Positions 16,670 through 56,727 of a stretch of DNA of 64,000 nt are shown here, piece after piece. A program made the translations under genes and the position numbers. Every line of letters begins with the position of its first letter. Position 1 is the first letter of the stretch. The DNA lies in assembly GCA_964252035.1 (NCBI GenBank), contig CAXUOO010000116.1; one strand, written 5' to 3'. The DNA is from Podarcis erhardii (lineage: Eukaryota). The notes beneath the pieces were generated by a model. It had not been told where the DNA came from, ran no database searches, and saw only the letters and a list, made by a program, of their open reading frames with translations.

Positions 16670-19308
16670 GTTGATTGACCGTAATAACTCTGCGATTCTA
16701 TTACAGTATGTGTAAAGCACATCTTTTTCTATTGTCATGCACAAGAAGACGCTTATTCAAAGACATTTGTTCCTGTATCAAGAACTTATGTGCGAGCATA
16801 CAATGTTCTATATGTATAAACCACATACATATATACGAATATACCAATATANNNNNNNNNNNNNNNNNNNNNNNNNNNNNNNNNNNNNNNNNNNNNNNNN
16901 NNNNNNNNNNNNNNNNNNNNNNNNNNNNNNNNNNNNNNNNNNNNNNNNNNNNNNNNNNNNNNNNNNNNNNNNNNNNNNNNNNNNNNNNNNNNNNNAGTAT
17001 TTGGATATTCGCAGAATTCTGAGAACGGGAGAAAGTCTTTGTTTGGCGCAAAAAGAAGAAGGAAACATACTTGGACCTTGCAGTTGCAGCGATTTTGGAC
17101 TTTTCTAGAGATATTAGCACAGCAGGGGGCGGCTTTGTGCTTTCGAAAGGAGGCGTGGAATATAAAGGAATCCAAAAAGGCGCCCGTGGATTGTTTTGGT
17201 GGTGCAAGGGGATTTTTTCATTCTACAGAAATCCAAGAAAGGGGGAAAAAGACAGGCAAGGAAAAAGCAAACAACTGCAGCCGAAGATGTACACACGACA
17301 GCTCGCAGAAAAAGTGAAAGAAGAAGAAAGGCAGTGAAAGTGAGAGCACAAGCAAGCTATCTAGACACAGTCGAAGCGAGGGCAGACTGGATAAGAAAGA
17401 AGAATGAAAGACAACAAAAGGTGTTTGAGAGAGGTAGGAGGAGAGCTACCTCACATATGCGCAAGCGATTTTTAAATTGAATTGTTTGCGCAGGTCAGCC
17501 CTGTCTGAAATTTTTGGAAAAAACGTGAGTGTCAGTGTGGGTTGAGAAGCGAGGGAAACACAGAAAGAGCGAAAAAAGAATTTACTAAACAGTTCGCTGA
17601 AAGACGTACTTGATTCGCTGGAAAGCAATGCGAGTTTCGCCTGAAAGTTGCTTTGAAGTGCCTTTTGCGTACAAGCTGATAATGATGTCCCATTGTTGTT
17701 TTTCATCTGCAGGCACCTGAAAAGAAAGGAAATGTGTGTGTTGCGAAAGCTGTATGAAGCCGTATTCAGAGACACTGCGAAACACACACTACACACACAG
17801 TCACAACTTGGAGTTGCAAATGACTGTACAGAAGAAGCAACACTGCTGTTTGGTCATGTATTATTGCATGCGTGACACGATAAAAGAGGCGAAAACAAGA
17901 GTTTCTCACGAAACTACTGCCCAAAGTGTGCTTCAAGAGCAAGAACCTTCTCTTCTACTGCACAGAAAAAAACGCCATTTGCGACATTATGAAGCCAAAC
18001 CAGCAGCAGCAACAGCAGCAGCAAGCAAAACATGCCCACCACTAATGGAAGTTCTTTTACTCGTCCCTCAGTTGGTCCAAAAACAAAGCGATCTTCTTTT
18101 CCTTCGTCCACATCATCACCTGCTAGATATTGAGCTACGCCCAACGCATCTTCCACTGCTTTGCTCAGTGCCCCAGGCGCTGCTCCCATTTGTCGCTGCC
18201 GAGCAAGGACTGACTGGCCTGAAGTGAGTCCACCAACCACATTCTACTTTAAAAATTTTTATATCTATGTATATTTCATGTGTTTGGTCGTTGTTTGGGT
18301 GACTACTACCAACCACCCTTTTTTAAATTAAGAAAATAGCGCATGCACGCATTTGAAAAATACCAAAAGTTTGCCTTGCTTTGATTCACCAGCCACCCAC
18401 TGCTGTCTGTTTGTCACAGCCGAACGCTACTGCCGGTTTTATACATACATATATATATGAGAATACAAATTTAGACATGTACCTATACAAATCATACAAG
18501 ACTTACAAAATAAGTGCGAGTCAGCAACAATCAAAGCGCGGTTTGTCCTAAGCTCCCGTTTATCACAGCTTCATAATTTCGCTCAAGAAAGTGAAACTCT
18601 CTGAAACGCTTTGTACATTTTTAAATATATATATGTGTGAATTCGTACGTACATAACTGCCTTCTACGAGATAAGTGAGAAACAGCATATTATTCATTTA
18701 GGTGAAAAAAAAATTTTACAGTTGCAGAAAGTGTACGCAGTGCTGCGCACTGCCGTATACGTGGGAACCGCCAGACTGTGAAATGTTTGATTTTCTACAA
18801 ACAAAAACTGCAGCTTCCTGTCGTGAAAATTCACTATAAGCACGTCTACATATATATACGCAGTGTTGTGAGCGCCATTGGACTTCTGTTTATGGCGATC
18901 CTTGAACAGATGTCTGCTCTTTTTCTTTTTTCATGAACATACGTGTATAAAATTCACAGAACAAACATTTAAAACATATGAGTAAAGTTCCAAAGCCACC
19001 ATACAGGTGCGGCGTTGTTGTTACAGAAGGTGCAATTTCATCTCTCTCTGAATGTTAGTTGCGATTTCTGCAAAAGTCTAACTGCAGCTAAATTACATAA
19101 TGAACTCGAGCAGTTGTATATAATATGCATGCGTAAATCGAAGAAAAACTGGTACGGGTACGCACGTAATTTCTATGGTCATGCGAACACACAGTAGAGA
19201 GAGCATAATATGAAAATTGAAAAAAAGGAAGCGTGATTCACTGTTCATTAAAACCCCAAATGCTTTCATATAAAGAGCGCCAACTCAAACCCCTATACGT
19301 GTGTAAAA

Positions 19309-24800: not shown

Positions 24801-26505
24801 AAAATATTAAAAACACCTTAATCAGGTACGCTGCTCTAGTCTAGACCGACACAAACATCTCAGAACCACTTACATATTTATATACGTATGATTAGATATG
24901 GAGATTGACATGTATACGCGCTTATGTGCTGAAACAGAAAAAAAATAGGGTCGTCAAGGGGATGAGTAAAATTAATGATTTACCTCCCTTAAAGGGTTTG
25001 CGCTTACACTACATATTCATATATATACACGTGAGTTCATGCCTACATAATATATACATGTACAGAATGTATATGAAAGGAAGATTAGACAAATGATCCA
25101 TTTGTGCAAATCTGTAGATTCAGCAGAAACAGTAGTGGAGAAAGATCACAGTGTACAGAAATCTTCTGTGTTGACAAGCCAAGCACTCATAACACGCTTT
25201 TTTTCACTTTTTATCGCGAAAAACGTCCGTGAACTTGCGCGCAGTCGTAAATACATGTCGCGACTACGATATGCATATAATTCACTTTACATAGTGTATA
25301 TGAAATTTTTATATATATACATATATATATTTACACATCGATCGGAATGAAGATTGGATGGTGCCAAATCGTGACTGCAACAGGGCAAAAAATCACCTTG
25401 AATCCTCGAAAGCCTACGACTTTCTGTAGACGAATATGCTTCTTGATATACTGAGTTACGTTGATAAAAAAAATTAAATGCGTAGACGAATTCATACTAA
25501 CGCCTCTTGAGGTCGATTGAGTCAGTCTCACGAAAGCGAAGTTTGGAAGAATAACTTTTTCGTGCAGATTTGCGTGATATTTGAAGAAAATACCACACAC
25601 GTATACAAGTATCGAAGTGTAGGGATGAAGACAAGGTAGTCCACAAAAAGCTATTGATATTATATACGCAATCTCAAACAGATACATAATGACGTATACA
25701 AGCTTCGATTGCAGACTAACAGCGACCAATTATTACAAGCCCACACGCCAAAGCGANNNNNNNNNNNNNNNNNNNNNNNNNNNNNNNNNNNNNNNNNNNN
25801 NNNNNNNNNNNNNNNNNNNNNNNNNNNNNNNNNNNNNNNNNNNNNNNNNNNNNNNNNNNNNNNNNNNNNNNNNNNNNNNNNNNNNNNNNNNNNNNNNNNN
25901 NNNNNNNTTGCCAGAAATGAGACGTTTTGAGATGAATGTCTGCGTGTCGTGGTACTCACATCATTTAAGCTACACTGACATATATATATATGTATATGCG
26001 TTCTATATAAGCCCCATTCACGCTATTTGATTAGAAGCAGAGTCAGAGACATATCTGCCGTTTCACTGCAAGCGGAGATTGCTGTACAGTATCGATTTCT
26101 GAATACAGGTAGATGCAGAAATCCGATTTTACAGGTATGCAAGTAATCCTATATAGAAAAGAAGTACGTCTCGCTAATGCTTGTACACATGGAGTAGCGA
26201 TATATACATATACAGACACGTACACACTACGTATGGTAGTAAAAACTTCAACAATGTACACTGCACAGACAGGCAGTTTTCCTAAAAAGACTCAAAAACT
26301 CACCTTTGGAAGTTCGTGAAAGATCCTCGACACGATGAACAGTCACGTAAATGTGGTAGAGTCGAGCGCCTGGCTCGCGTGCCTGTCCCTCTGCAACATT
26401 CAAACAAAAGCCCCTCTTTTAAATTATGAGCATATATATATATATATATATACATATATTTACACAAATATACAGTGCAAACATATGTGCGCATGTATAC
26501 AATGC

Positions 26506-40185: not shown

Positions 40186-43100
40186 CTGTATCTGTGTAAG
40201 GAAGCCTTTCCTTCATGCCTTCACACAATCGTCACTACCCAGATATAAACTTTGTTCAGTGCGGTGTAGAACTATCGGGTCTGCTAATTAAATAGATTTA
40301 CAAGTTATACAACAATAAGTAGCTTCCTTTCCGTATGCTGTATACTGATGTGCTAGACTAATTTTCCAGAATATATCTCAGTGGGTCTCACATGCCAATG
40401 TTTGTCCGTGAATTTACCGATGAACCACATAAATGTATCTATTTTTCGCACTATACACAGACCAAACCATAACTACATACATATATATTTGCTTGCGTAT
40501 TCCGGTAATGCACCAGGTCTGTAGGTTGGCAGGCATGCACAAATAGGTTTTTCACAGTGCATCACTTGCTGCGTTAAAGCAGTAGCAGCGTGTTGCGTGA
40601 ATCTGGAAAGAATATTTCTGAAATCAGTTTCGACAAAAAATATCATAATTCTTCCACTTCGCACACATATGCGTAAAGACCTGAGATACCCTACGTTGGC
40701 TCTCCCATCAGAGTGCTTAAAAAAGCAGGCCACTACTCCGCTCTCGCGGGAGATTATTTAAACCTAGTTTGTATTCGCTTGCATAGTTTGCAACAAAGCA
40801 AGATGATACGCTTCAGGTGCCTCTGTTCTTGAAGCTTCAAAGCGATGAGCTGAATGATGTTAGCGGTCGTTGAGTATATTGTCCGTGTGATGTGCAATGT
40901 GCCATGCATGCATGCGTTTTACTTCAGAATGCATTCGAGCTTTTCGTTCCTACGCAGCCCTTAACTTTCCAGCAACACGCTGGACCTGCATCCAGTCTTT
41001 CTCATGTGTCTTGGTTCGCACAGTTTTCTTTTTCTGTGAATGTTCACATCTTTACTCACAAAGGCTTTCTTTGCATTTCTCTCGTCCTCATTGCGTAGCA
41101 TTGGAGGAAGCAGACCCCATTTTATTATAGTTTTGCAGCGTTCGTACGCTACAAAATGAAAATAAAGAGCCTATGTGGGTATGTGTTATCAGTATTGAGT
41201 CTTTATTTTTGTGTTTTCTGTTAGGTCGCAACGCTTTCTCGATACGCGTCGGAACACACATACATTGCAATGTACGTGTACAGGCATGTCCACAATAGTG
41301 CAATTTGTGTGTGACTTTATGCTATCTGTTGATAAGAGAACGTATAGGCATCCTGAGAATGTTGAAGTGAAAATTTGGTAATTTTGCTTCAGCATATGCC
41401 CTTGACCAGCAGAGTCTACGAACTGCTGCTGATAGAGTACAGTGTTACTTACCAGTCCCTTGCCGTTCACCCGCAATATTTGACTCGCTAGGTTCTCTTT
41501 TGAAACTTTTGTATGATAACGTCACATCCCTCAAGCAATCGCTGCAGCCTGAAAAACTTTCTGAATCTACTTATCCGTGGATAGTCACGCAGCTTTTTGT
41601 TTCAGACTCTCTTTTTTCGAAAATTCTGCTCGATATAATCACTGCTTCTCTTGACTCTTTCCTAAGCCAATAAAATGTGCAGGTGTTTTTAATAAATTAG
41701 TCCCTGAAAATGCGTTTTCCCCAAAATATTCGGGTGGCCAATCGTAAGCTGCTGCAGAGAAACTAAGACACGAGCTGAGCTGCTGCTGCTGTTGCCCCAA
41801 CAGGAAACCGTTGACTTTTCCAGAAACTGTACTACTGCTGTAAAAGGAGCTCTACCACAAATGCACAAGTAACTGACATTGCAGTGTTTCCCAGAAGCGC
41901 TAGAGACCAGTGGTTTCTTTCGCGGTAAGTTTTTGATTTTTCGACTCACACCCTCCGTTAACGCGCATTCCACACATTGTCAGATCGAGATCGTTTTTTC
42001 TATGCGGCTGAGTGGTTCTTTCGTGTTGCTCCTTTCTTCACACTCTGGCTTTCAAAGGTCCCTTCACACCGGGATTTCAGTGTCCGCTTCTCTCACTAAA
42101 ATGCTGCTGACAAGGGCTTTTCTGCATTCTTTTCACGCCTTGCGGCATGCAGCAACTTCTTCATAGCACCACACTCCGTGCACCAGCAGCAGCAGCAGAG
42201 AAATCGTCAACAACAGCTGGAGCTTCACGAGGAAGAGAAGGCGACGCAGCAGCCCCCTCAGCTGGAGCAGCATCAGCAGCAGAGCCAACTTTGAGTGTAG
42301 CCTCAAAAAAGCAGAAAGTTCGAGCAACTTCGGTAGCACCCAGCGCAGAATCGCCGCGTCTGCCAGTCTGCGACGCGACTGCCCCAGCTTCTCAACGAAA
42401 CAGCTTTCTCTGTGTTTTTCCTTCCGCAACGCAGCTCTCAGTGTTTACAGCGGACTGCAAAGCAGCCCCTTTTCCTTGTGTTGTTGTTGCTGCTGTTGCC
42501 AGTGGTTGTTGTGCAAGAGGGGCGTTCGAGTGCAAGCCCCAACTCCTGCTTTGCTTCGTTCAAGCTCCAGCAGATCCAGCAGCAGCCACAGCAGAGCCGT
42601 TGTTGTTTGCTCTCGAAAAACTGGCAGCACAACAAGTCATCATTGCCTCACCACGCATTATTACCACTGTCGCCAGCAGTAGCAGCAGTAGTAGTAGGAG
42701 CAACTGCCACAGACGCCTTCTCACTCGCAACACTGAAAAACGCTGCTGCAACTGACAGCAGCAGCAACAACAAAAGCAGCAGATCCTTTTTCTGCAGACA
42801 AAGTCTGCCACCGGCAACTGCTTCTTCTTCTTCTTCTTCTTCTTCTGCTTCTGCTTCTTCTTCTTCTTCTTCTTCTTCGTGGGTGCTGCTGTTTAGTGGA
42901 GCCCTTTTTCTTGTTCGGCCCAACTTCCAAAGGAAAGTGTCCTGCGTCTGTTCCGCGCCTGTTTTCACTGCTGCGAGTGCCTCTTCTGGTTTGCCTGAGC
43001 CTGCCCGCAATTCGCCTCCTCAAACTTGCAGCAGCAGCAGCTCGAGTAAAAGCAGTTCTCCTAGAAAGTGGAGAAACCCAAGTCGAACTCGAAACCAACG

Positions 43101-43856
43101 TGAAGAACGAGCGACACCACCAACAAGAGTAGTAGCTCGCTTTCCGCTTTCTTGCCTAGTCGCTTTTCTGCTGTCACCACCACCACCAGCACAGCAGGAA
43201 AAGGAGGAAGAGGAGCATTCGCAGCAGCAGCAGCAGCTTCAGCAGTGCAAAAAGAGCCAGCAACTCCTCGTTCTGCTAAAGTAAGTCCTTTTCCTCCTTT
43301 CGTTTCTGCTTCATCTTCTTTCGTCACTACTCCTCCTTTTCCTCCTCCGAGCAGTCCCCTCCTCCACGCTTGCGCTTGGGCGCCCAAATTTGCAGAGAAA
43401 GCGTCTTCACCGCCACTCCAATATCCTCCACCACCCCCACTCCTCCGACGACCGCGATGTGCAGGTGTACGTACACTGGAAGCGAAGCAGAAGAAGACGA
43501 CCACCGCGACTCCTCTGTTTGCCGCGGCCTTCAAAGAAAGAGGAGGAAAAGCAGATTTTCGCAGACACCCCCACTTAGACTGCTTTTTTCACAACAACTA
43601 CAACAACGCCCACCACCACCAGCAGCAGCTGCTGCTACAGTGCAGGAGAGTGTCTACTTTGCAGACACGCAGTGAAGGAGGAGGAGGAAGAATAATCGAC
43701 TCACTGCAGGAGGCCTGTCCCCAGCAGTAGCGGGCTCTTTGGTGGTGGTAAAAGCAGCAGCGTTTTTTTGTGCACTACTACTAGTAGTAGTAGTAGTAGC
43801 GAGAGGCGCAGACTTGAAAATGACCAGTTTTGCAACGCGCGCAGGCCCGACGATGA

Positions 43857-46800
43857 AGGGGCAGAAAAACCACTGGAGCGAAACTTCCCTCAAAGACACG
43901 AGGGGGCGCTTCGACTACTACTGCTGGAAGACGAAGCAGCGTCGACGAAAACAACTCCAGCAAAGAAATCCCAAGTAAACAACACAGCCACTACCACCAC
44001 CACCACCACCACAACAACAGCGACGACGATGAACGCCTGCCTTTTTCTGAAAGTGCAGCCACTGCTTCAGAAGAAGAAGAGGAAGCAGCTGACGTGGCGT
44101 ACTTGCTTCGACGCAGTGAAGAACTGCCACGAGCGGAATTGGAGGCGCTGCTGCAGGACTTTCGAGTCAATCTTCCACACGTCTTTCGCTTCGTGGAAAA
44201 CGACTTCATAGCGGAGCAGCAGCGACGACTGCTTGCAGGTTCAGCAGAGCGCTGTCAAAAGCGAGAAAAGAGCGGGGCGGAAACAACGCCACCAAAAGAA
44301 GAAGAAGAGGGAGAAGGAGATATAACGAGTGGGTTTGAGTTGTTGGAGCCGCATGCGTTTTCCCACGGAAACGGAGAGAGGGGAGACGCTTCTGCAGCTG
44401 TCAGACCCTCGAATGCAAGGGTCTGCTTCTTCTTCTCTGCGAAGAGAGGAAAATCAGAGAGGGGCGCCAGCAGCAACCACACAACGCAGAAGGAGACTGA
44501 GGGAGGGGAGCAGCAGCCGAAGACAGCCGAAAAAGAAGTGGTGCTGTCTCCTACTACTACTACTGCTACTGCTACTATTGCTACTAGTAGTGGAGATCCT
44601 GCTGTGGCTGCGCTTGTTGGAGAAGAAGAAGCGGAGTCTGCGCTGCTGCCAGAAACGAGCATCACTTCTTCGCTCTTCGAAGACCTTTCGCCCTACTCTC
44701 TCAGAGATCTCCGCTTGGTGCTGCGCCTCGTTCTTTTGCATGCTGACCGAATAGACCGAACCACAACCGCACCAGCAGCCACCGCGGAAACTCCCAAAGA
44801 CACCACTGTCTCCTCTCTCACTACTACTACTACTATTTCTACTCCTGCGAATAGCGCTAGTGACTCTGCTGTTGTTCCTGCTAGCACCTCTGTTGCTGAG
44901 TCTGAGTCTTCCGTGTCGATCTCTGCTGGAAAAACAACCAACTCCACGCAGAAGCAGGGAGCAGACACACAGAGGCCAGCCCAACAGCACAAACACTACC
45001 AACAAGAAGAAGAAACAGGAAAAAATTCACTGCTCGAAGAAGTAGCACCATCACCACCACCACCACCACCACTACCATCACCAGTAGGAGTGACTGAGCA
45101 TGCAGCAAAGAAGGAGAAGAGAGAGGAGGCAACAACAACAGCAGCAGCAGGGGAGGGGGGGCCTGTTTGTGTTTCGTCGGTGCGACTCGAAGAGGTGCTG
45201 CAGCAACGCAAGCCAATAGACAAGTCGCTTTTAGAGGCCTTGCCTCGCTACGAACTGCAGGAGTTGCTGCAGCGCTTGGGCAGTTTCCTAGTGCACTTGC
45301 CTTTCGACGACTTCCTCAACACGCCTTCTCTGTTTTCAACCACGACTGAGCAACTCAGAGATCTCGTGGGCTTGGCTCTCGCGCGCATGCTGCAGCGCAC
45401 CTACTCGCCCTCAAACTTGGTCCTCAAACGCCGCCTCACTCGCTGGACTGCTGCGCGTCTTGCGTATTACAATTTCACCTCTGCACAAAAACGAAAACAA
45501 CCAACACAAACACAAGAACGAGAACCACCACAAAAAGGAGAACCACCACCACCACAAAAAGGAGAATCACCACCACCACAAAAAGGAGAATCACCACCAC
45601 CACAAAAAGGAGAATCACCACCACCACAAAAAGGAGAATCACCACCACCACAAAAAGGAGAATCACCACCACCACAAAAAGGAGAACAGTCACTACAAGC
45701 ACACTTCCCACACAGCCACAGAGAGCAGCGGACTTGTTCTGTTGTGTGGAGAGCTGAAGCAGCAGAAAAGGAAGACGGCGTGCAAACTGCCGCTGAACTG
45801 CTGCCAGCGAGTCGAGGAAAGGAGGGAGCCAACAACTCACTCACTTTTTCAGAAAGAAGCTGCTCCCCAACAACCACCACCACCACCACCACCACAGAGG
45901 CAGCAGCAGTAGCGGTAGGAGGAGGAGTAGTAGTAGACAGCGCAGCAGCAGCAGTTGAAGGGCCTTCTTTGCTGGAAGGAAAGGCCACTGCAAAAGAAGC
46001 GAGAGAGAGAGTGGGAAGAAAGAGGGCAGACTCGTCGACAGCAGCCGCCAATGAGGAGAGGAAAGAAGGAAGAAAAAGAAGCGACGAAGAAGCAGAAGAA
46101 GAAGAAAAGGAAGACGTTGGAGGAGGAGGAGAGAGGGAGCCGAGGATTGGTGCTGGGGGAGTGGGAGGAGGGCGACTGGATGCAGCTTCGCTTGCCAAGT
46201 ATGCGAGAGCAATGACTCGCGGAATTTACGGCGTGAAGACTCGTTTTCGTCAGCTCAAGAGCAGCCCCCAAAAAACAAAGGAAGAAAGCAGCGCCAGCAA
46301 CAGCAGCAGCAGTTCGTTTGGTGGTGGTGGTGGTGAGGGAGCAGCAGCAGCGAAGACGACAGAAACTGCAACGCAGACAGACAGCAGAGATTCCAAAGCA
46401 GCCGAAACGAAGGAAGACTCTGCGAAAAATAGTGGTGGTGCGAAAGAAGAGAAAAAAGGAGAAGAAGAGGAAGAAGAAGAGGAAGAGGAAGTGGATGTGG
46501 CAGACCTTGAAGACGAGGAGAGACTGTTGAGTGTGGATGCTGCGACGACTGTGGAAGAAAGCGAAGCAGCAACTGGTGATATGGGATTTGCAGATCGCCT
46601 GGAACTGGAAGGCATTCCACTAGAAGACATGCAGTTGCTGCTGGCGGATCCGTGCGAAATGGGCATGCACAGTCTGCGCGCTGTGCTGAGAAACAGAGAA
46701 AACGCAGCCTTGTTGCCAACAACTTGCAAACTGCTCCAAACAAACAACGCGCTCGACTCCTCGCTTTCCTGGCGACAACTGCGAGACCTTTACTCGCTGC

Positions 46801-49800
46801 TCCTCAGTCGGCTGCGCCACCCCCTCAGCGCCGCCGACAGCTCACTTGGCGAAAAAGAAGAAAAAGAAGAAGAAAAAGAAGAAGAAGAAGAAGAAGAAGA
46901 AGAAGAAAAGCGGGCGAGCTCGCAAGGCGACGTTGAGCAGCCAGTGGGAGTGGAGACAGAAAAGGCGAGTGCTGAGCGAAGTTTGCAGCATCGACTGCTG
47001 AACGTAGCTGAAGCAGAAGCAGAAGCAGCAGTGTTTCACTCTTTTCCTTCTTTCCAGGAAAGTAAGTTGCAGCTTTTCAGTGGAGCTACGCCAGGCAGTG
47101 CGGCTTTTTTGCAGACTTCTGAGCAAGCCAAGCAAAACTCCAGTTGCAACAAAAAGAAGCAGCGAAGAAGAAGGAGAAAGGAGACAGTGAGCGCAGCAGT
47201 TGCAACTGCGCAGCACTTGGGGGGGGGCGCTTGTTTTGCGTTTGGGGAGAAAAGCTGTCTAGAATTCGTGGCTGCGCGCATGCAAGTGCAAAACAAGGCA
47301 CTCGCCACCACCACCACGCAGCAAAAGCGAAGAGAAAAAAAAAACGCTGAACTGCACCAAACAGCAACAGCAGTAACAGCCTCGAAAGTTGTGGAACAAA
47401 CAAACCACGTTGCAGACAAAGGGGGTAACGCAACTGCTGCTTCTGCAACTCAAGTGCACGAAAGAGGAGAGAGTTCGAGAGTTGATGACGCAATAATAGC
47501 AGCAGCAGAAGAAGGAGAAGGAGTGTCGAGAAATAGTCGCAGTAGTTGTTTCGGGCTCTGTTCTGAGAGGCGTGGGTCAGAAGTTGCAGCAGAAAGCACG
47601 AAAAACGACGCAGCAGTTTCAGCAGTAGTAAACGAGTCAGCTTTTCTTCGAGAAAACGGCGCTGAACTGCCACGCAGCCCCCACGAAGCTGAAGCAAAAG
47701 GAGCAGAAACTCCGTTTTCTGCAGTGTTGTGCAGCGAAAGAAGAGAGAAGTCTCGTTGTGGGCAAAAAGAAGAAGATCGAAGGAACAACCGCAAACAGCA
47801 GCAGCCGCTGCCGACGACGACGAGAGCGCCAGTCAACCAGTCGGCAGCACTAGCAACACAACAAGAAGAAGAGAAAGAAGAGAAAGAAGAGAAAAAAGAG
47901 AAAGAAGAGAAAGAAGAGAAAGAAGAGAAAGAAGGAGAAGGAGAAGGAGATGGAGAGGCGTTTTTTTTTGCGGAGGATGAGGGGAGACTGGGAAAAATTT
48001 CACCAACGAGCTCGAACAGCAGGCAGCAACTTGGAGAGGTTTTGAGCGAGGAAAGCGGGAAAAAAGGCGAAAACTCAGACGCTGTGGAGAAAGGGGAGGA
48101 GTGCACCGAAGTCGACGAGGGGAGAGACGCTGCTGGCTCTGGTTGTTTCGTCGCTGAAAAAGCGGAGAAAAAAAGCAACCGCGTTTTCCCTGCTGCTTCC
48201 ACAACCACAAGTGCTTCGCCTGCAGCGTTCGCAACAACAGCCACCACGGTGCGCGCACAAGAGAGAAACGCGGCTTTTTTCGCATCGACGAGTGAAAACG
48301 AAGAAAAAGGAGAAAAAGAAGAAAAACCAGTTGGAGCTTGTTTTGAAGCTGGTGAGAGCGGCTCTTCGGCCTACGTGGGTTTCTTGAGTTTGGGACTTTC
48401 ACCAGCTGTGGCAGCCGCTGCTGTGCGTTTTTTGGGCAGCAAAAACGCAGGGCCCTCGCCTCTGCAGCGAAGGGCGGTTCCTCAACTGCTGCGTTTTCTG
48501 CAGCAACGCCACCACCACCAGCAGCAGCAGCAAAATCAACGCACTCTACACTATTTCACTCACCAACAAGAAGAAGAACAGGAGGAGGAGGTTATGAGAG
48601 CGTCGTCAGCGATTCGAAGAGAAAGAGGAGGTGCAGGGGGTGCTGCGCTGTTGCTGGCTGGGCAAACAGGCAGTGGAAAGACGCTTGCGTATTTGCTGCC
48701 TCTGCTGCAGCTGCTGAAAGCGCAGGAGAAACTCTCGCAGCGTGCACACGCAGCAGCAAAGTGCGCGTCTAGCAGCACGAGAAGAAGAGGCAAAGACGCA
48801 CAAGCAGAAATGCAATCACCACCACCTTTTTCTTCTCTTTCTGCTCTTTCTTTTTGCTCTCCCCAAGAGGAAGAAGAAGCGCAGCTTCGACTGGAGCGCT
48901 TTCGAAGAAGAGCCGCAGCCGCGCCTCGAGCGCTGATTCTCACTCCGACTTGGGAACTGAGTGAACAAGTGGCTAACGTGTTGCAGCGTTTGTGTCAGCC
49001 TCTCTTCTCCACACACAAGAACTCTCTGCTGCACTCCACTGCCCCTGCCTACTCCTCGTGGAAAACAACTGCTGAAACTGCGACTACACAACCACCACCA
49101 CCACCACCTTCACTACCTCAAAAGAACACCACCACCACTATTAGTGCTGTTTCTGCTGCTTTTAACGCGTGTGGGGTTCCTGGTGGTGGGTGCTGGTGGC
49201 AGCGTGGAGTTTACTTGGAAGATTGTCGCTTGTCAGTGTTGAGTCTTTCAGGCGCGAAAGGCCTGGGCCAGCAGCGCAGAGAGTTGCGAGAAAGAGCCGC
49301 CTTTTTGGACGTAGTTGTGGGCACTCCTCCACGCGTAGTTAAGCTGCTCGAGTGGGGTTTGTTGCAGCTGCAGCAACTGCACTTGTTGGTGCTGGACGAA
49401 GCAGACTTGCTGCTCAGTTCGAATGCGGCTGGCTTTTTCAGAGAAATCCAAACTATTCTGCAGCACCACCATTACTATCATCACCAGCAGCAGAAACAGG
49501 CGCGCCGAGTGGCACCAGCAGCACCAGCAGAAGCAGCTCTTTTCGCTGCACCAAGTGCACCCCCTAACGAGGTTGTTTCTACTCGAGCAGAGTCGGCTCC
49601 CCCCTTCTTTTTGCAAAGTTTCCGTTTCTCTGAATCGCCAGCTGCTGCTGTTGTCGCTGTGGCAGCTACTGCTCCGCAGCGACTGCAAGTGGCTCTCGAG
49701 CAGCTGCTGCTGCAGCAGCGGAAACAGAGCTCGCCTGTGCATGCAAACAAAGTCAGTTACTTTTCTCCAGTTACTCAAACAAGTGCAGAAAACAACTCGA

Positions 49801-50270
49801 GTAAGTCAGAGGGCAAATCAGAGCAACTCGCGCCAGCTGCTGCGCTGCTTTCACGAAAGGGGGCTGCTGCAGGCGCACTGCGCAAAACCAGTGCAAAAAA
49901 AACAGCAAAAGTAGAAACAGTAGAAGAAGCAGAAGAAGCAGAAGAAGAAGAAGAAGAAGAAAGAGAAAGGAGACTGCAGCAGCAGAGGCAGTTGGGGGTG
50001 GTTGAAGTGGTGGAAACGGAGGGCCTGCACTTGACTCCGCTCGCTATGAAACACGAAATGGTCGATTTGCAGGGCCGAGACAAGTTGGCGGTGCTGCGGC
50101 AGTTGCTCGCCACGCATCCTCGACTCAAAACAGCGCGAAAAACCCTCATTTTCACCAACTCAGTGGCTGCATGCAGAGTTTGTGAACACACTTTGAAAGA
50201 AGCGCTCGCCACTGCAGCTCCGACAGCCGCTGCGCAGCTAGCATTAGTGCACCAGCAGCAAACTGTGGCT
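43857..50270 (+). CDS. DEAD-box helicase giant exon (N-terminal extension, RecA1 and start of RecA2)
   Basis: Uninterrupted frame from the TGA at 43854-43856 to the donor GCT|GTAAGT at 50271; carries motifs Q to IV and poly-E/A/T/P/Q/S runs. Confidence 0.9.
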
Positions 50271-52512
50271 GTAAGTGTGTCTTGTGCGTGCTAAAAAACT
50301 GAGTTGAATGTGGTCTTTTTCTCTTTGTGGTGTGCGGACAAACATTTCCACTCCAATGAAGAGGTCTCGAGTGTGTCTCCTTGCTGCGACGAAATCTCTA
50401 TATATATAAGTGGCGAAAATGTGTGATTGTGTGTGTGTGTGTGTGGTTGCATACAAGTGACTTCTGCTTTGAGATATTATATGTTGATATGTGTATGTGT
50501 GGTTGTGACTACGCTACTTCATGTATCACTTAGCAGCAACAACTTAGACCCAACCAGGAAAAACGCTTCTGTTTACTCAGCGAAACGGATATTTAATCAT
50601 CCTCACTATGCACTGCGCTACACGTACTACGCTGCTAATTATATGTGTGTATGTGTGTGTGCAATGATGTGTGCGATCATTCAATGTAGAAACATACTTC
50701 CATGCTTATGTCAAAAATATATATATATATATCGTTTGAGAGGAGGGTTGGATGTTTCTGTGCGTACGTGCATTTTTTATACAGACGCGGTTTTTGGGTT
50801 TTTAGGCGAAAGTCGAGCGAGCTATTTGAGTGTGTGTATTAGGGAGATTGAAAGGCATGTATGTGTGTACTTGAAATGGAAGGTCTCAAACACATACGTA
50901 TGTGTATATTTCATATGATGTACAAGTGTGTCTATACAAATCTACGAATCTACAAGTTTGAAAATAGTGAGTAGATTCATTCGCTTCTGTGACTCTAGGA
51001 GATTTGAAGCAGAATCTTGTGCAAGTGTCAGCAGGCAGACACTACTTGCATCGATTTAGATGTGTAAATATATATAGATATGTAAATATATGCTTGCACC
51101 CAACCAGATCAATCTTTCTACATATAGTCCTCTTGTTCTTTGGTGAGTTATGGTGGATGTACCTCACAGAACTACGTGAGAGTCTTTGTGCGCACAAATA
51201 TTCACAGTGCTTGAATTTACATGTGTGTAAATATGTCAGTTGAATCGAAGTATTATATATACCTGCATACGAACGAAGATACACGTTTATCTCTGTACAC
51301 CATTTATACATATAGAAACACGCATGGATACCTATCTTGCTTAAGCACACATAAAATGTGTATATTTCTGTACACCACTTATACATGTAGAAACACGCAT
51401 GGATCCCTATCTTTCTTAAGCACACATAATATGTGTATATTTGTATATTGCTTTTTCATACTTTTGCTGCATTGAATTTCTGCGCAGCTGTGTGTGGACA
51501 AGCCTGATGTTCACTTGACGCGCTGCTCGTTTGTCGAGATCTCTGTTTCGTCTTTTATCGCATTTAGTGTATATGTGAAAAATTTTGGTTTTTTTTTCGT
51601 ATACCTTTTACGTGCAGAGCTGCCACGGCTTGATGCCTCGACAAACGCGTCGCATGCACTTCGATCGCTTTGTGAAGAGCAGCAAGTGCCGCTTTTTGTT
51701 TGTACTGATCTACTCAGTAGAGGACTGGATTTCCCTTGTGTAGATGTCGTTATTTTGTTCGACTTCCCACTTTCTGCTGTAGACTACATTCACCGGTAAA
51801 GTCTTCTTTTTCGCTCTTCATATGTCATTTCGCCCTCTCTATCCCGCTGTCTATAAATATATATATATATATAGATAGATATATATATAGATATAGGTTT
51901 ATATGTGTCTTGATGTGGCAGCTTCTTTGTATAGGTAGTGGCGCAATTGTTACAACTTCTTCGCAAGAATAGTTCGAAAGACATGAGTCTCTTCCATTCT
52001 TGTAGCTGGTCATCCATCTCTCTTCAGTATTATATACATATGCATATATGTATGCAGAAAGTAATCGGCTTTTTCTTTCACAATTTTTATATGTTTGGTC
52101 GTCGTCTCTTCGCTGTAGATAAAGTTCACATTCATTTCCGTGGAAGATTCTCTTTTACTCCTTTATCATCTCGAGTCCGCTTGAGTCGTTTTCTCGCCTT
52201 TTTGGTCTCTTTCTATATTTGTATATGTATAGCGTACATATAGACATACATATACATATATAGATATACATATACATACATATCGTATAGCTTCAAGTTA
52301 CGCTAAATGTAGGTTTTTCACCCGCGCTAATGTTGGTTCCGGCATTGCTCGCTAGACGTACACAGACAAAGTTTCAACAAACTATCTACTGTAGCTGCTC
52401 TTAGTAAGAGGCTGCGATTTTAAAAAAAGTTTATAAAATCTCTTTACATATCTAGGTAGATATAATACCACCAGCAAATAGAGCGTGTACTTTTATTTAT
52501 CACTGCCCCCTT

Positions 52513-52560
<48 letters not shown>

Positions 52561-54687
52561 GGGTGTATCTCCACGTACATGAGAATATAAATATATATAT
52601 ATATATATATGTATATGTATATAGTAGAGTGTATCTCCACGTACATGAAAATATAAATATCTGTATATATATATATGTATATGTATATAGTAGAGTGTAT
52701 TTCCACGTACATGAAAATATAAATATCTGTATATATATATGTATATGTATATAGTAGAGTGTATCTCCACGTACATGAGAAAATGAATATCTGTATATAT
52801 ATATGTATATTTGCATTGAAATGTGTGATTTATCTTTGTTTTTGTAGGGCGGGACGAACTTGTCGTTTGAGAGGAGGCAGTAGCGAGGAGAATTTGAGGG
52901 ATGGTGAAGCAGCAAGAGGAGGACTAGTAATATCGCTGCTACAAAAGAGAGATCTTGTGCTTGCTACAGCAATTCAACGAGTTTTGGAGAAACAAAAGGA
53001 AACAGCTGCTGCTGCTTCTACTCGGTCTTTGACTGTGAATGCTGCTTCTTTTTTTCGGCCGCTGACTCTCACCGATCTCTCTGCAGACAAAGCGCAGTAT
53101 CGAAAAGGCAGGCCTCTTCACTGTTTGTCCCAGGAAGGTAGGCAAAGATTCTCTGCATTTTCAGGGTGTGTATATTCGTATATAGTCCGTCTCAATTATG
53201 CACGAAGGGGTCCTCAATTCAAAGATCAACGTTTGATAGAAAAAACTTCGAAAAACGTGGGTTCTTACACCCGTGGAAATGGATTTACGGTCACCTCTCT
53301 CTCCACACATGCACTTACACAAAGATGCGTGTGTGAATTGTTCCTCTCCTTTTTGTGGATGATTTATCATTCGAAATGCTACTTTGTCGCTTATTTGCTT
53401 TAACGCCTTTTTCCTTATGTACATGTGTGTATTCCATGAACACACAACTGTGGAGATCACTTGCCTCATATGTATGCACTGACACTGCAGTTCCACGACT
53501 AACCGCATATCTTTAAATAGCAACTCATAACTGTATAAACATACATATATATATGTGTTTACATTCACTTTATTACGCTCCCCGAAAACGTATGTTCTGT
53601 CGATCCTTCCAGGCCTGGAACTCTTTACTTTTCGTGTCATTTTTCGGCCTCACTTTCTCTCACTCTCTGTTTTTGCGTATTTGTCTGATGAAAAAAATTC
53701 ATATATATATGTATTTCTATATATCTCCACTATATTATTGCTGTCTTCACCTTTGTTTTCACCCTCGTTCTGGCGTGTCTCGAGCATACGTCCTTACTTT
53801 TCTATGAAGGTCACTTGTCATACTGCAAATTCTAGCAGTAATGAGTTGCTAGTATACATATACTTGTTTACAACGATAGTGTCATAAAGTGTATATATAT
53901 ATATATTTATTTATATAAAATCAATTTACATACTTGTGTGAATTCCTTTTGGAGTGTGGTAATACATTATAATATTGCCGTACTAGGAAGTTAGTTGCGA
54001 GTCTTCGTCTGTGTGTATCTGTATGCAAAAAAGGCTGTACATAATATAAGTACATATGTCAGTGTATGTCAAATAAAATCAGTAACTTATAATCTTTTGT
54101 TTCCTTAAATCAACCGTTCACTTGTCATATGATCTTTATAATCTTTGTAACAATGTTATTAGCTGTGAATGAACATATGTAACAAATTTGTATCAATGAA
54201 GAGCTCAAGAACTGCACGAGTTGATCAGTTATAGTATCGAACTACTCTGATGATGATTTTTCCAGAAATGTCAATACAAATTACATAGAGTATTTTCATT
54301 CGAAGTCAAATCCCTCTTAATCGGTATTATAGGTTGATTGCCTCTAGACACCAAAGCGTAAAATTGGAATATACAGGAAAACTAAATTGAACTTGAAACA
54401 GTTACTTCAGTTTGATTTATGCATGAATAGCTCGATATCATTCCATACAGATAAAGTATGAGTAGTAACGAAGTTCATTACTTCTTAACACTTGCTTATA
54501 GAATAATTGGATTTAAACCACGCAGAGAGAGAGAGTTCAGCTGAAATTAGTTGCTACAAGAAGCTTGACTCGCTACAAACCCGTGTGTGTAAATTACCTG
54601 TCTATCACACAAAGTCTCTTGAGACCCTTAAAAACCTATTTGCTTACGCATCTCTTCCAAAAGCCGCTCTTTTCATATATGTATATG

Positions 54688-54733
<46 letters not shown>

Positions 54734-56351
54734 GTTTGCATATGTTTGCTGCATATGTATTATTTATTTATATATAAATATGTATATATATATATATATA
54801 TATAATCATTATTATGTGTGGTTTCGATGTGTCACTGCTGCATCTGGTGGTGCTGTCTTTTTTCTGCTGCTGATGCGCTTTTTTATGGAAAAACGCTTCG
54901 TGATGGTTTTTGCCGCTGATGCTGTAAGAAAACTTGCTGTTGTCAAAATAAAACGTAGTCCACGAATTTCTACTGAATTTCACTCGCTCTACAACTGCTC
55001 TAAACGTTTCACTGCTGTTGCAGTTGATTTTGGTGGTGCTGACTCTTTCTGTTGTTTCAACTACAACTTCTCTGCTTCCTATTGCTTTCGTTGCTGAGAA
55101 ACCTGCAGCTTTGTAGATGAGCAGAGTGGCTGCGGTGTATGTACAGGAGGGTACTCGCAAAAAAAGAAAGAAAACTCATTTTCACGAACGCGCAAGAAAG
55201 AGCGAGAAGTTACGAGCAAAGCGAGAAGGGCGAACTGGAAGCCTCCAAAGTAATCAGCACATCTTCCATGAGCAGCAGCATTGTAATCAATCACCTTCAC
55301 CGCAATCACTAAAAAAACTATTCAAACACATCCACACATATATATATATATATGAAGCCGTAGTATACATAAGATTTCTTGCTTTTTTCAAATTTCCCAG
55401 TGTACGTGTGAGCTTGTAGAGCTGCTGTGGATAGAGCAACGAAATACACAAATCCTGTAGAAAATGTGATCCCATGGAGCGTAGTCATGCTTATATTACT
55501 CCGCACATAGCAGCACCAAACTAAGTAGGACTTCGGTTCATTCTTCTAATGCTGGCAGCGTGTGTTATTTAATCATGGAAAATTATTAACAGAGCTTCAA
55601 CGCATCAAGTGAATCTTGATATAGCGTTTGATGCGTCTACACACAACAGCTGGAAACTCTCGCTGCTTGTGCCAAAAACACTGCTGTTGCCGTCTATAAT
55701 ACTGCACGTGTGTATGCGTACTAGAACAAAGACTACAACTCTAAGACAAGGAGATGACTAATCCACTGCTATTGGCACCTTTAGTCGACGAATAGCCTTC
55801 ACCCTCATATTGCTTTCACCTACTGGTTCCAGTGCTTCTAAACATCCTCCACCACTACTGGTATTATAGATTACAATTGATAGCAGTGTCATAACGCTAC
55901 CACTGTTACCCCGTTCTACCACTTGAATCTTCTACACTGTATCGCCAAAAAATCCAATTCCGCTGCTTTTCTACATCTCAACTTGGTGTTTCCGTGGCTT
56001 TGTCTTTCACTTCCTTGCTCCACATATGTGCATATATGTAAAAAACTCTCCTATAAATGCCTCTCTGCTTCATATATATATATATATGTAGATTGTAATG
56101 CTATCACTGTATTTTTCCATGTGCGCATAAATCATTCCCACAATGCTTCTCTGGCTTCCCTTCGTCTCTTCCTTACTCTTTCTGAATTTTCATATATATA
56201 TAGTCATCTATACGTATGTTCAAAAGTGACGCTGCTGCAGCTGCTATTTTTGACCATCAAATACACATGACGCATATCTCTGTTGCGGAAGCCATCTAGC
56301 TGATATGACAATAGACTCTTTTCTTTCGTATCGACACATATACTAGTCTAA

Positions 56352-56418
<67 letters not shown>

Positions 56419-56727
56419 TAGAAGTAGACGTATGTATGTAGGGAACTGCTATGGAGCTGCTGTGGTTGCAGACCGCCGGAGTGGCATCGCATGCGTAGAG
56501 AAATGGCGCAGCAGCAATTAGGTAATAAGCCAAAGCAGCTCCACCGTCAAAAGCAGCAACAACATAAACGAAAACTGCGTGTGGAAAAAAAGCAGAAACA
56601 GGCGGAGGAAATGGGGAAAAAACGGCAGCGACAAATCACGCGCATGCAGCGCACTAGAGATGGCTCTATGTATGCAGCCGCACGCAAGTCTCCTCTCTCA
56701 TTTCACCGCCAAAAAAGCCGGGAATAA
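43857..56727 (+). CDS. DEAD-box RNA helicase, RH39-like organellar type, with very long low-complexity N-terminus (start unresolved)
   Basis: Giant exon (frame open from 43857) to about 50270, then 51618-51795, 52848-53137, 55147-55249 and 56472-56727. Motifs: Q ([18 protein letters not shown]), I GQTGSGKT (48660), Ia PTWEL, Ib TPPR, II DEAD (49395), [35 protein letters not shown] split across an intron. Confidence 0.9.
45522..45686 (+). repeat. Coding 24-bp minisatellite, 7 copies, (S/P)PPPQKGE
   Basis: CAAAAAGGAGAA recurs with a 24-bp period from about 45531 to 45675, in frame in the helicase. Confidence 0.95.
51292..51443. repeat. 75-bp tandem duplication in helicase intron
   Basis: TCTGTACACCA.TTATACAT.TAGAAACACGCATGGAT.CCTATCTT.CTTAAGCACACATAA.ATGTGTATATT at 51292 and 51367. 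Confidence 0.9.
51618..51795 (+). CDS. DEAD-box helicase exon (motif V to VI)
   Basis: gtgcag|[59 protein letters not shown](R)|GTAAAG; exact 5' boundary uncertain. Confidence 0.88.
52555..52810. repeat. 64-66-bp minisatellite, 4 copies, with internal (TA)n
   Basis: Core GTGTAT(C/T)TCCACGTACATGA at 52563, 52629, 52695 and 52759, abutting a (TA)n run at 52516-52557. Confidence 0.93.
52848..53137 (+). CDS. DEAD-box helicase exon (motif VI and C-terminal helix)
   Basis: ttgtag|(R)[46 protein letters not shown]|GTAGGC, phase 2 to 1. Confidence 0.88.
55147..55249 (+). CDS. Probable helicase penultimate exon (basic tail)
   Basis: gtacag|[34 protein letters not shown](K)|GTAATC, phase 1 to 2; an in-frame alternative acceptor lies at 55117. 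Confidence 0.6.
56472..56727 (+). CDS. Probable helicase terminal exon (basic tail)
   Basis: ttgcag|[84 protein letters not shown]; the phase-2 start matches the preceding donor. Confidence 0.65.

Follow-up and report, generated by a model that had tools for sequence, protein, structure and literature searches.

The window analysed here is a 64,000-nucleotide stretch of contig CAXUOO010000116.1 in the Podarcis erhardii assembly GCA_964252035.1, and it carries on its plus strand a gene for a DEAD-box RNA helicase. The translated exons indicate that this locus is a sarcocystid orthologue of Toxoplasma TGME49_260450 and that it encodes a nuclear-encoded helicase of the RH39 family, on the red-plastid branch of that family. 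The Toxoplasma orthologue is located in the apicoplast, and we consider it fairly probable that the enzyme carries out ATP-dependent local remodelling of the apicoplast large-subunit ribosomal RNA (LSU rRNA) during assembly of the 50S subunit. Judged by the matches to its orthologues (E 1e-45 to 1e-50), which are well past the chance level, the gene is real. It is a further, so far generically annotated member of a known family, and this is a useful annotation and no new kind of system. What sets it apart is an N-terminal extension of about 1,400 residues, specific to the lineage, ahead of the helicase core.

The gene has at least five exons and four introns and spans at least positions 43857 to 56727. 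No RNA run covers the locus, so the splice sites and the gene model rest on consensus splice signals and on the alignment to orthologues only, and each exon was searched and translated separately. A previous sequence-only reading of the window had placed the helicase at 48378-53137. Its end is the last base of exon 3, but the interval holds the helicase core only, and the gene continues for 3.6 kb past it and extends at least 4.5 kb upstream of it. The parts of the gene are as follows.

42147-43856, plus strand: 5' region, possibly with the first exon or exons and a targeting leader (open reading frame pieces 42111-42752 and 43104-43727, in the frame of the main exon)
43857-50270, plus strand: large exon with the N-terminal extension, RecA1 and motif IV, stop-free over 2138 codons
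44091-46793, plus strand: five conserved N-terminal blocks, from the alignment with Toxoplasma, Neospora and Besnoitia
45524-45686, plus strand: in-frame 24-nt tandem repeat of PPPQKGES units (6.8 copies, 99% matches)
48357-50270, plus strand: first part of the helicase core, from Pfam DEAD and the motif positions
50271-51617, plus strand: intron 1, GT..AG, AT-rich
51618-51795, plus strand: exon 2, which runs from the segment linking motifs IV and V through motif V into the beginning of motif VI (..YIH + CG), from translations and Helicase_C (E 1.1e-09)
51693-51697, plus strand: frame break in exon 2, where five T in a row separate its two in-frame pieces, from tblastn and translations
51796-52847, plus strand: intron 2, GT..AG
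52848-53137, plus strand: exon 3, with the rest of motif VI (R-AGRTCR), an insert of about 15 residues and the family signature with LSADKAQY
53138-55146, plus strand: intron 3, donor G/GTAGGC, acceptor ..tgtacag/
55147-55249, plus strand: exon 4, a basic linker ending ..RRANWKPP, from the alignment to Toxoplasma and Cardiosporidium
55250-56471, plus strand: intron 4
56472-56727, plus strand: last exon, a lysine/arginine-rich C-terminal tail with the stop codon TAA at 56725-56727

The listed open reading frame of the large exon begins at 44094; the frame itself is open from 43857, and its final 640 codons make up the first half of the helicase. All tblastn blocks to Toxoplasma, Neospora and Besnoitia fall in this frame. 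The large exon ends at a GCT/GTAAGT donor (GT at 50271-50272, phase 0) and exon 3 at its G/GTAGGC donor (GT at 53138-53139, phase 1). The end of exon 4 matches ..RRAGWKPPK of Toxoplasma and ..RRGGWTAPK of Cardiosporidium, the last exon aligns with the Toxoplasma tail (..AWHQERAE.. to ..AAAKRKP), and exons 4 and 5 encode a strongly basic C-terminal tail. The G+C content is about 53% in the exons and 30-40% in the intervening stretches, which are rich in TA repeats.

The core stretches quoted in the sequence-only reading were found on the plus strand at 50022-50108, 50142-50165 (TLIFTNSV), 51698-51793 (..DYIH) and 52849-53136 (AGRT..). Pieces of the window matched the Pfam DEAD family (E 2.1e-20) and Helicase_C (E 1.1e-09), and the best PDB match of the core piece in the large exon was DDX28 (E 2.4e-11). 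Motifs Q, I, Ia, Ib, II, III, IV, V and VI occur in order over two RecA domains, which places the protein among the DEAD-box helicases of superfamily 2; the assembly has a single break of the frame, which falls between motifs IV and V. As translated, the catalytic motifs from Q to VI are intact and canonical, and long low-complexity inserts separate them. In the large exon the motifs lie at the following positions.

48390-48482, plus strand: Q region
48657-48683, plus strand: core motif between the Q region and motif Ia
48933-48971, plus strand: motif Ia
49311-49337, plus strand: motif Ib, GTPPR
49389-49412, plus strand: motif II, DEAD
49656-49679, plus strand: motif III, AAT
50142-50165, plus strand: motif IV, LIFTNS (within TLIFTNSV)

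Motif II reads DEVD, not DEAD, in many red-lineage members including Chromera, and the mouse-like DDX28 chain in the PDB likewise has DEVD; the coccidian proteins retain DEAD, as the window gene does.

The five blocks of the N-terminal extension are common only to Sarcocystidae (examples lie at 44106-44153, 44670-44711, 45240-45389, 46215-46241 and 46653-46793). Chromera and Cardiosporidium also have long N-terminal extensions, which could not be linked to the sarcocystid one by homology: hidden Markov models (HMMs) of the blocks gave no match to the N-termini of Chromera, Cardiosporidium and Eimeria, and BLAST of the sarcocystid extension against the extensions of the same three detected no homology. 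No Pfam family matched the extension. An impression of repeated helical modules shared across the extensions was visual only, and it was dropped because BLAST and the block HMMs found no homology. AlphaFold, given the best conserved N-terminal block with four orthologues, returned an all-helical model at low confidence (predicted local distance difference test score 57). In the alignment, the Toxoplasma, Neospora and Besnoitia orthologues have no PPPQKGES repeat at the corresponding position.

The closest relatives are all coccidian. A word search used the whole large exon as length reference, since the core alone had given weak matches through low-complexity words. It matched Neospora, Hammondia, Toxoplasma and Besnoitia proteins of about 1,800 residues (E 1e-45 to 1e-50) and Chromera velia Cvel_10000 (2,503 residues). 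In an exhaustive HMMER search, only three representatives scored below 1e-30 (Neospora, Besnoitia and a partial Cystoisospora suis protein), and the next matches stood at about 1e-17. Because only sarcocystids match below 1e-30 before the scores drop, the window gene comes from a sarcocystid coccidian, one that by sequence is none of Neospora, Besnoitia, Cystoisospora suis, Toxoplasma and Hammondia; the sequence-only reading had likewise called the gene coccidian. The Toxoplasma orthologue has the same architecture, with the conserved N-terminal blocks, a core with inserts, the C-terminal signature and the basic tail, and over the retained columns of the core the two are up to about 52% identical. 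It differs from the window gene in its inserts and low-complexity stretches and has no frame break. More distant members are found in Eimeria (1,121 and 1,142 residues) and Cardiosporidium (1,017 residues).

P0042, the compact protein closest to those of Toxoplasma, Chromera and Eimeria, is related to stramenopile algal proteins and to plant and green-algal proteins named "DEAD-box ATP-dependent RNA helicase 39" (E 1e-101 to 1e-117, 41-48% identity). The nameable top non-coccidian HMMER matches of the gene are algal or protist proteins that are named RH39 or cluster with RH39. Non-photosynthetic members (Andalucia, Planoprotostelium, Synchytrium) form a separate group; for one of this heterotroph group, P0092, DDX28 was the clear best solved-structure match (197.7 vs 179.6 bits). 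For the Toxoplasma orthologue DDX28 was also at the top, with 109 bits vs 102 for Prp28, and the kinetoplastid mitoribosome factor mt-LAF2 came next after DDX28. Ranking by PDB score fails to separate RH39 from the cytosolic DDX families, with Prp28, DDX21, DDX6 and DDX17 not far below DDX28, and the ESM Atlas returned generic DEAD-box clusters only.

The window is represented in all trees by the piece from the large exon (exon 1). In a FastTree analysis of 246 rows, the coccidia stood on a long, near-basal branch away from Chromera. This basal placement was taken as long-branch attraction, because a site-heterogeneous model moved the coccidia into the red-lineage clade. In the 70-row IQ-TREE analysis under that kind of model (LG+C20 with posterior mean site frequencies), the coccidia grouped with the red-plastid lineage, which was apart from green RH39 (97) and from a heterotroph and RH50 group (91). 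With the coccidia constrained to group with Chromera, Cardiosporidium and a GHVT transcriptome row, the likelihood was slightly above that of the free tree (approximately unbiased test, p-AU 0.54). P0100 also stood with the coccidian clade in this tree (95), probably by long-branch attraction. P0100, P0075 and P0156 are long DEAD-box proteins (1,100-1,553 residues) that have in common an N-terminal ..ALSHFVG.. region and share a conserved C-terminal domain ending ..KRICSL(I/L/V).

Fifteen long or redundant rows were then dropped (P0100, P0102, P0169, P0130, P0168, P0116, P0080, P0001, P0187, P0066, P0114, P0081, P0044, P0043 and P0083). In the resulting bootstrapped IQ-TREE of 55 rows, with support given as ultrafast bootstrap (UFBoot)/Shimodaira-Hasegawa-like approximate likelihood ratio test (SH-aLRT), the coccidia were recovered at 100/94 and joined Chromera, Cardiosporidium and GHVT at 97/98, within a red-lineage clade of 28 rows with diatoms and ochrophytes at 100/97. 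Green RH39 formed its own clade at 97/97. The family stood against the outgroup at 99/99, the 50 family rows being set against five outgroup rows of which four are unnamed and none is a curated cytosolic DDX protein. Forcing the coccidia to join the heterotroph (DDX28-type) and RH50 rows made the likelihood worse by 25.7 log units (p-AU 0.037), and the heterotroph DDX28-type clade leaves out the coccidia. Plant and algal RH50, which belongs to the same superfamily, sits on a long branch near the heterotroph rows and not with the coccidian protein. The sequence-only reading had likened the core to RH39, RH50 and DDX28 rather than to cytosolic helicases and had named a phylogeny of the RecA core as the check. 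The place of P0042 among RH39-named proteins, the separation from the other DEAD-box rows and the top rank of DDX28 among solved structures agree with that claim, and the phylogeny puts the coccidia in the RH39 family on its red-plastid branch.

A short C-terminal signature tells the same story. After motif VI, the coccidia, Chromera, Cardiosporidium and stramenopiles have in common ..KRD.VLA.AIQ.. followed by LS..K.DY. The second part was found in 81/92 red-lineage rows, in 5/6 sarcocystid rows, in 3 of the 25 heterotroph rows and in none of the 43 green RH39 rows; these counts are descriptive, because the pattern was picked after the alignment had been viewed, and they exclude RH50, since no RH50-like row matched the motif-VI pattern. 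Exon 3 of the window reads LSADKAQY, one residue away from the pattern, and thus carries the red-lineage signature. In the aligned sequences the signature agrees with the tree as an independent character. Chromera velia Cvel_10000 and Cardiosporidium cionae KAF8819993.1, the sister rows of the coccidia, have the same signature, and Cardiosporidium also has the ..RRGGW..PK tail. Arabidopsis RH39 (NARA12) and its green orthologues belong to the same DEAD-box subfamily and share with the coccidian protein the ..K(K/R)D..LA..I(Q/E).. segment after motif VI. Both are plastid proteins, here by way of the Toxoplasma orthologue. The green proteins form a clade separate from the red lineage and have about 620-680 residues, compared with at least 2,300 here; the coccidian protein has three to four times the size of plant RH39.

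With regard to the organelle, the sequence-only reading had left open either the apicoplast or the fragmented mitoribosome. At the N-terminus, the orthologues of Toxoplasma, Neospora, Hammondia, Besnoitia and Eimeria and the Eimeria-related P0144 have a hydrophobic, signal-like stretch and then a basic, acid-poor one. By a crude hydrophobicity measure, signal-like leaders were present in 27/73 red-lineage, 1/29 green and 0/14 heterotroph rows. The Chromera leader is followed by F, and an F after the leader is a hallmark of plastid import in red-type complex plastids. In the window, the two 5' open reading frame pieces have few acidic residues and stops between them, with an ATG at 42147, and a hydrophobic stretch at about 42450-42520 loosely resembles the signal peptides of the orthologues.

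Barylyuk et al. mapped the Toxoplasma proteome by hyperplexed localisation of organelle proteins by isotope tagging (hyperLOPIT), and their supplements list TGME49_260450 with 1841 residues, 199.866 kDa and the SignalP5 call "SP" (PMC7670262). It was detected with 13-24 peptides per experiment and assigned to the apicoplast with probability 1 by the T-augmented Gaussian mixture classification (TAGM-MAP); its CRISPR score is -1.29 (PMC7670262). The ME49 orthologue in our set, P0014 (XP_002365218.2), has 1841 residues and an average mass of 199.99 kDa. The plastid location is thus measured in the Toxoplasma orthologue, which is assigned to the apicoplast and not to the mitochondrion. The hyperLOPIT assignment and the leaders of the orthologues therefore support the apicoplast half of the alternative and disfavour the mitochondrion, and the published spatial proteomics agrees with the claim that the protein is organellar. 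The same dataset places two other DEAD-box helicases in the Toxoplasma apicoplast, TGME49_291670 (682 residues, CRISPR score -2.52) and TGME49_222140 (908 residues, -5.27), and puts TGME49_313240, an "ethylene-responsive RNA helicase", in the soluble mitochondrial class (PMC7670262).

As to function, DDX28 acts in mitochondrial large-subunit assembly, and other DEAD-box proteins are anchored on structured RNA by basic tails of this kind. In Arabidopsis, RH39 binds to helix H62 of the chloroplast 23S rRNA and is needed for the hidden break in H63, which comes late in 50S maturation (PMC5694952; PMC5442247); the hidden-break role has been shown for the plant RH39 only. Because of these roles of RH39 and DDX28, the canonical catalytic motifs and the basic tail, we propose that the coccidian enzyme remodels apicoplast rRNA. 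In this species a signal-plus-transit leader would direct the helicase into the apicoplast. There the enzyme would be held on a precursor of the LSU rRNA by its basic C-terminal tail, and perhaps also by the long N-terminal extension, and the two RecA domains with ATP would open or clamp a short local RNA helix. Such remodelling may then allow the apicoplast 50S subunit to pass a late step of folding, cutting or protein loading.

Several points weigh against this proposal or against the evidence on which it stands. We know of no hidden break in apicoplast LSU rRNA. No published function was found for TGME49_260450 or for any apicomplexan member, and the literature searched does not name TGME49_260450. 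The match between TGME49_260450 and P0014 was made by name, length and mass, not by sequence. The CRISPR score of -1.29 looks mild if the protein is an essential factor in apicoplast translation, given the -2.52 and -5.27 of the other two apicoplast helicases, and one of these two, whose subfamilies are unassigned, could conceivably be a closer coccidian counterpart of RH39. The 5' region showed no significant similarity to the N-termini of the orthologues, and the leader and start of the window gene are only putative. In the 70-row tree the grouping of the coccidia with the red-plastid lineage had an SH-aLRT value of only 83, and forcing them to join the heterotroph and RH50 rows cost 12 log-likelihood units (p-AU 0.18), so that this grouping was not rejected; the strong support appeared after the post hoc removal of rows, which were chosen with the first tree in view. 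Finally, the assembly in its present state has a broken reading frame. In the part of the supplements available from a study of apicoplast-less Toxoplasma, TGME49_260450 was not found.

The main rival reading, possible but in our judgement unlikely, is that the protein is an apicoplast helicase of the RH39 family whose main substrate is something other than the ribosome. It could act on polycistronic apicoplast transcripts, in mRNA or tRNA processing, RNA decay or R-loop removal, with the extension giving it a new partner. The DEAD-box subfamily predicts chemistry better than substrate, the factors of apicoplast RNA metabolism are mostly uncharacterised, and the mild CRISPR score and the 1,400-residue extension, with five blocks confined to Sarcocystidae and no known domain, would fit such a role. 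In Plasmodium, another DEAD-box helicase co-purifies with nucleoid proteins, which we count on the same side (PMC11634067). Against this, the family members with a stated function, plant RH39 and DDX28, act on large-subunit rRNA, and the core and C-terminal signature are conserved with the RH39/DDX28 members.

A narrower form of the rRNA proposal is that the enzyme serves an RH39-dependent step on apicoplast LSU rRNA, such as an unnoticed hidden break or end trimming, with the extension as a parasite-specific adaptor. We regard this as quite unlikely. Apicoplast translation is a validated drug target, and if this form were true, the enzyme would be a selective handle on apicoplast ribosome biogenesis.

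The frame break in exon 2 raises the possibility of a pseudogene. In tblastn with the Toxoplasma protein, exon 2 matched in two frames. The frame from 51618 gives a 25-residue stretch that mirrors Toxoplasma SCHGSMPPATRKIHFSRF and breaks at the run of five T (T5), before VCTD; after the run, the shifted frame at 51698-51793 gives the VCTD-containing stretch that ends in DYIH. The sequence-only reading had taken the text before VCTD from the open reading frame 51494-51799 and had overlooked the break. That text is in the wrong frame, because exon 2 from 51618 matches Toxoplasma in the other frame up to the T5 run. Logan contigs of four runs were mapped on the locus, with a parasite contig depth of 2-4. 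One contig of run X2, which is from another study with another host label and about 95% alike in sequence, covers 51540-51768 at a depth of about 2 and has one extra T (six T) at 51693-51697. Run X1, from the same sample and the best match to the window, has no contig over 51600-51799, and because of this the T5 count of the assembly is confirmed in neither direction.

We think that the break is very probably an error of a low-coverage assembly. If it were a real loss of one base, the protein of this parasite would be truncated before motif V, and the T5 run where the frame needs a multiple of three, together with the lack of an X1 contig over the site, would agree with such a loss. However, the sequence beyond the break remains open and conserved through three further exons, motifs V and VI and the splice sites are intact, the contig of the close relative has T6, and the parasite coverage is very low. 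A pseudogene is therefore distinctly improbable. Automatic annotation of this assembly would make a truncated or mis-spliced model from the break in exon 2.

A coccidian counterpart of DDX28, mitochondrial and acting on the fragmented mitoribosome, appears very improbable. DDX28 is the best solved-structure match of both the RecA1 piece of the window and the Toxoplasma protein, followed by mt-LAF2. The human and mouse proteins, which belong to the same superfamily, align from motif Q through the segment after motif VI, and the unpruned tree did not reject a DDX28-type grouping. DDX28 and the coccidian protein probably do a similar job on organellar LSU rRNA. The lead over Prp28 in the PDB search is small, however, the DDX28-type rows of non-photosynthetic eukaryotes form another clade, and DDX28 is mitochondrial and not plastid and is without the giant extension. 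The apicoplast assignment and the predicted signal peptide of the Toxoplasma orthologue, the position in the red-plastid clade of the 55-row tree with its costly forced alternative, and the red-lineage signature all count against it. A nuclear or cytosolic helicase of the DDX5, DDX3 or Prp28 type with a chance resemblance to RH39 is hardly credible: the closest relatives and the tree speak against it, as do the signature motif, the signal peptides and the hyperLOPIT location, even though the scores of Prp28, DDX21, DDX6 and DDX17 were not far under that of DDX28.

Some further features of the window were noted. Intron 1 contains a 75-nt direct repeat at 51288-51442 (2.1 copies, 92% matches) and intron 2 a 66-nt tandem repeat at 52519-52804 (4.4 copies). 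The depth of Logan contigs was about 40-200 at 52519-52804, 51000-51199 and 56000-56199, compared with 2-4 elsewhere, and many contigs link about 52810 to about 56072. These three places look like a dispersed multi-copy family of TA-rich repeats, possibly with copies in the host genome too. The upstream neighbour of the helicase gene, on the minus strand at 36101-37738, is an ATG-started open reading frame of 545 codons with a GxxxGxG-type nucleotide-binding motif, and it resembles a membrane-anchored short-chain dehydrogenase. Runs of N lie outside the gene at 16852-16995 (144 bases) and 25757-25907 (151 bases).

To our knowledge, the factors that mature and assemble the apicoplast ribosome are almost unknown. 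The present analysis ties TGME49_260450, which has carried a generic annotation, and the copy in this parasite to the RH39 family, which has a defined role in chloroplast rRNA. The helicase may thus serve as a concrete candidate for apicoplast 50S biogenesis, and its position on the red-plastid branch suggests that it is a further nuclear gene in which the red-algal origin of the apicoplast can be traced.

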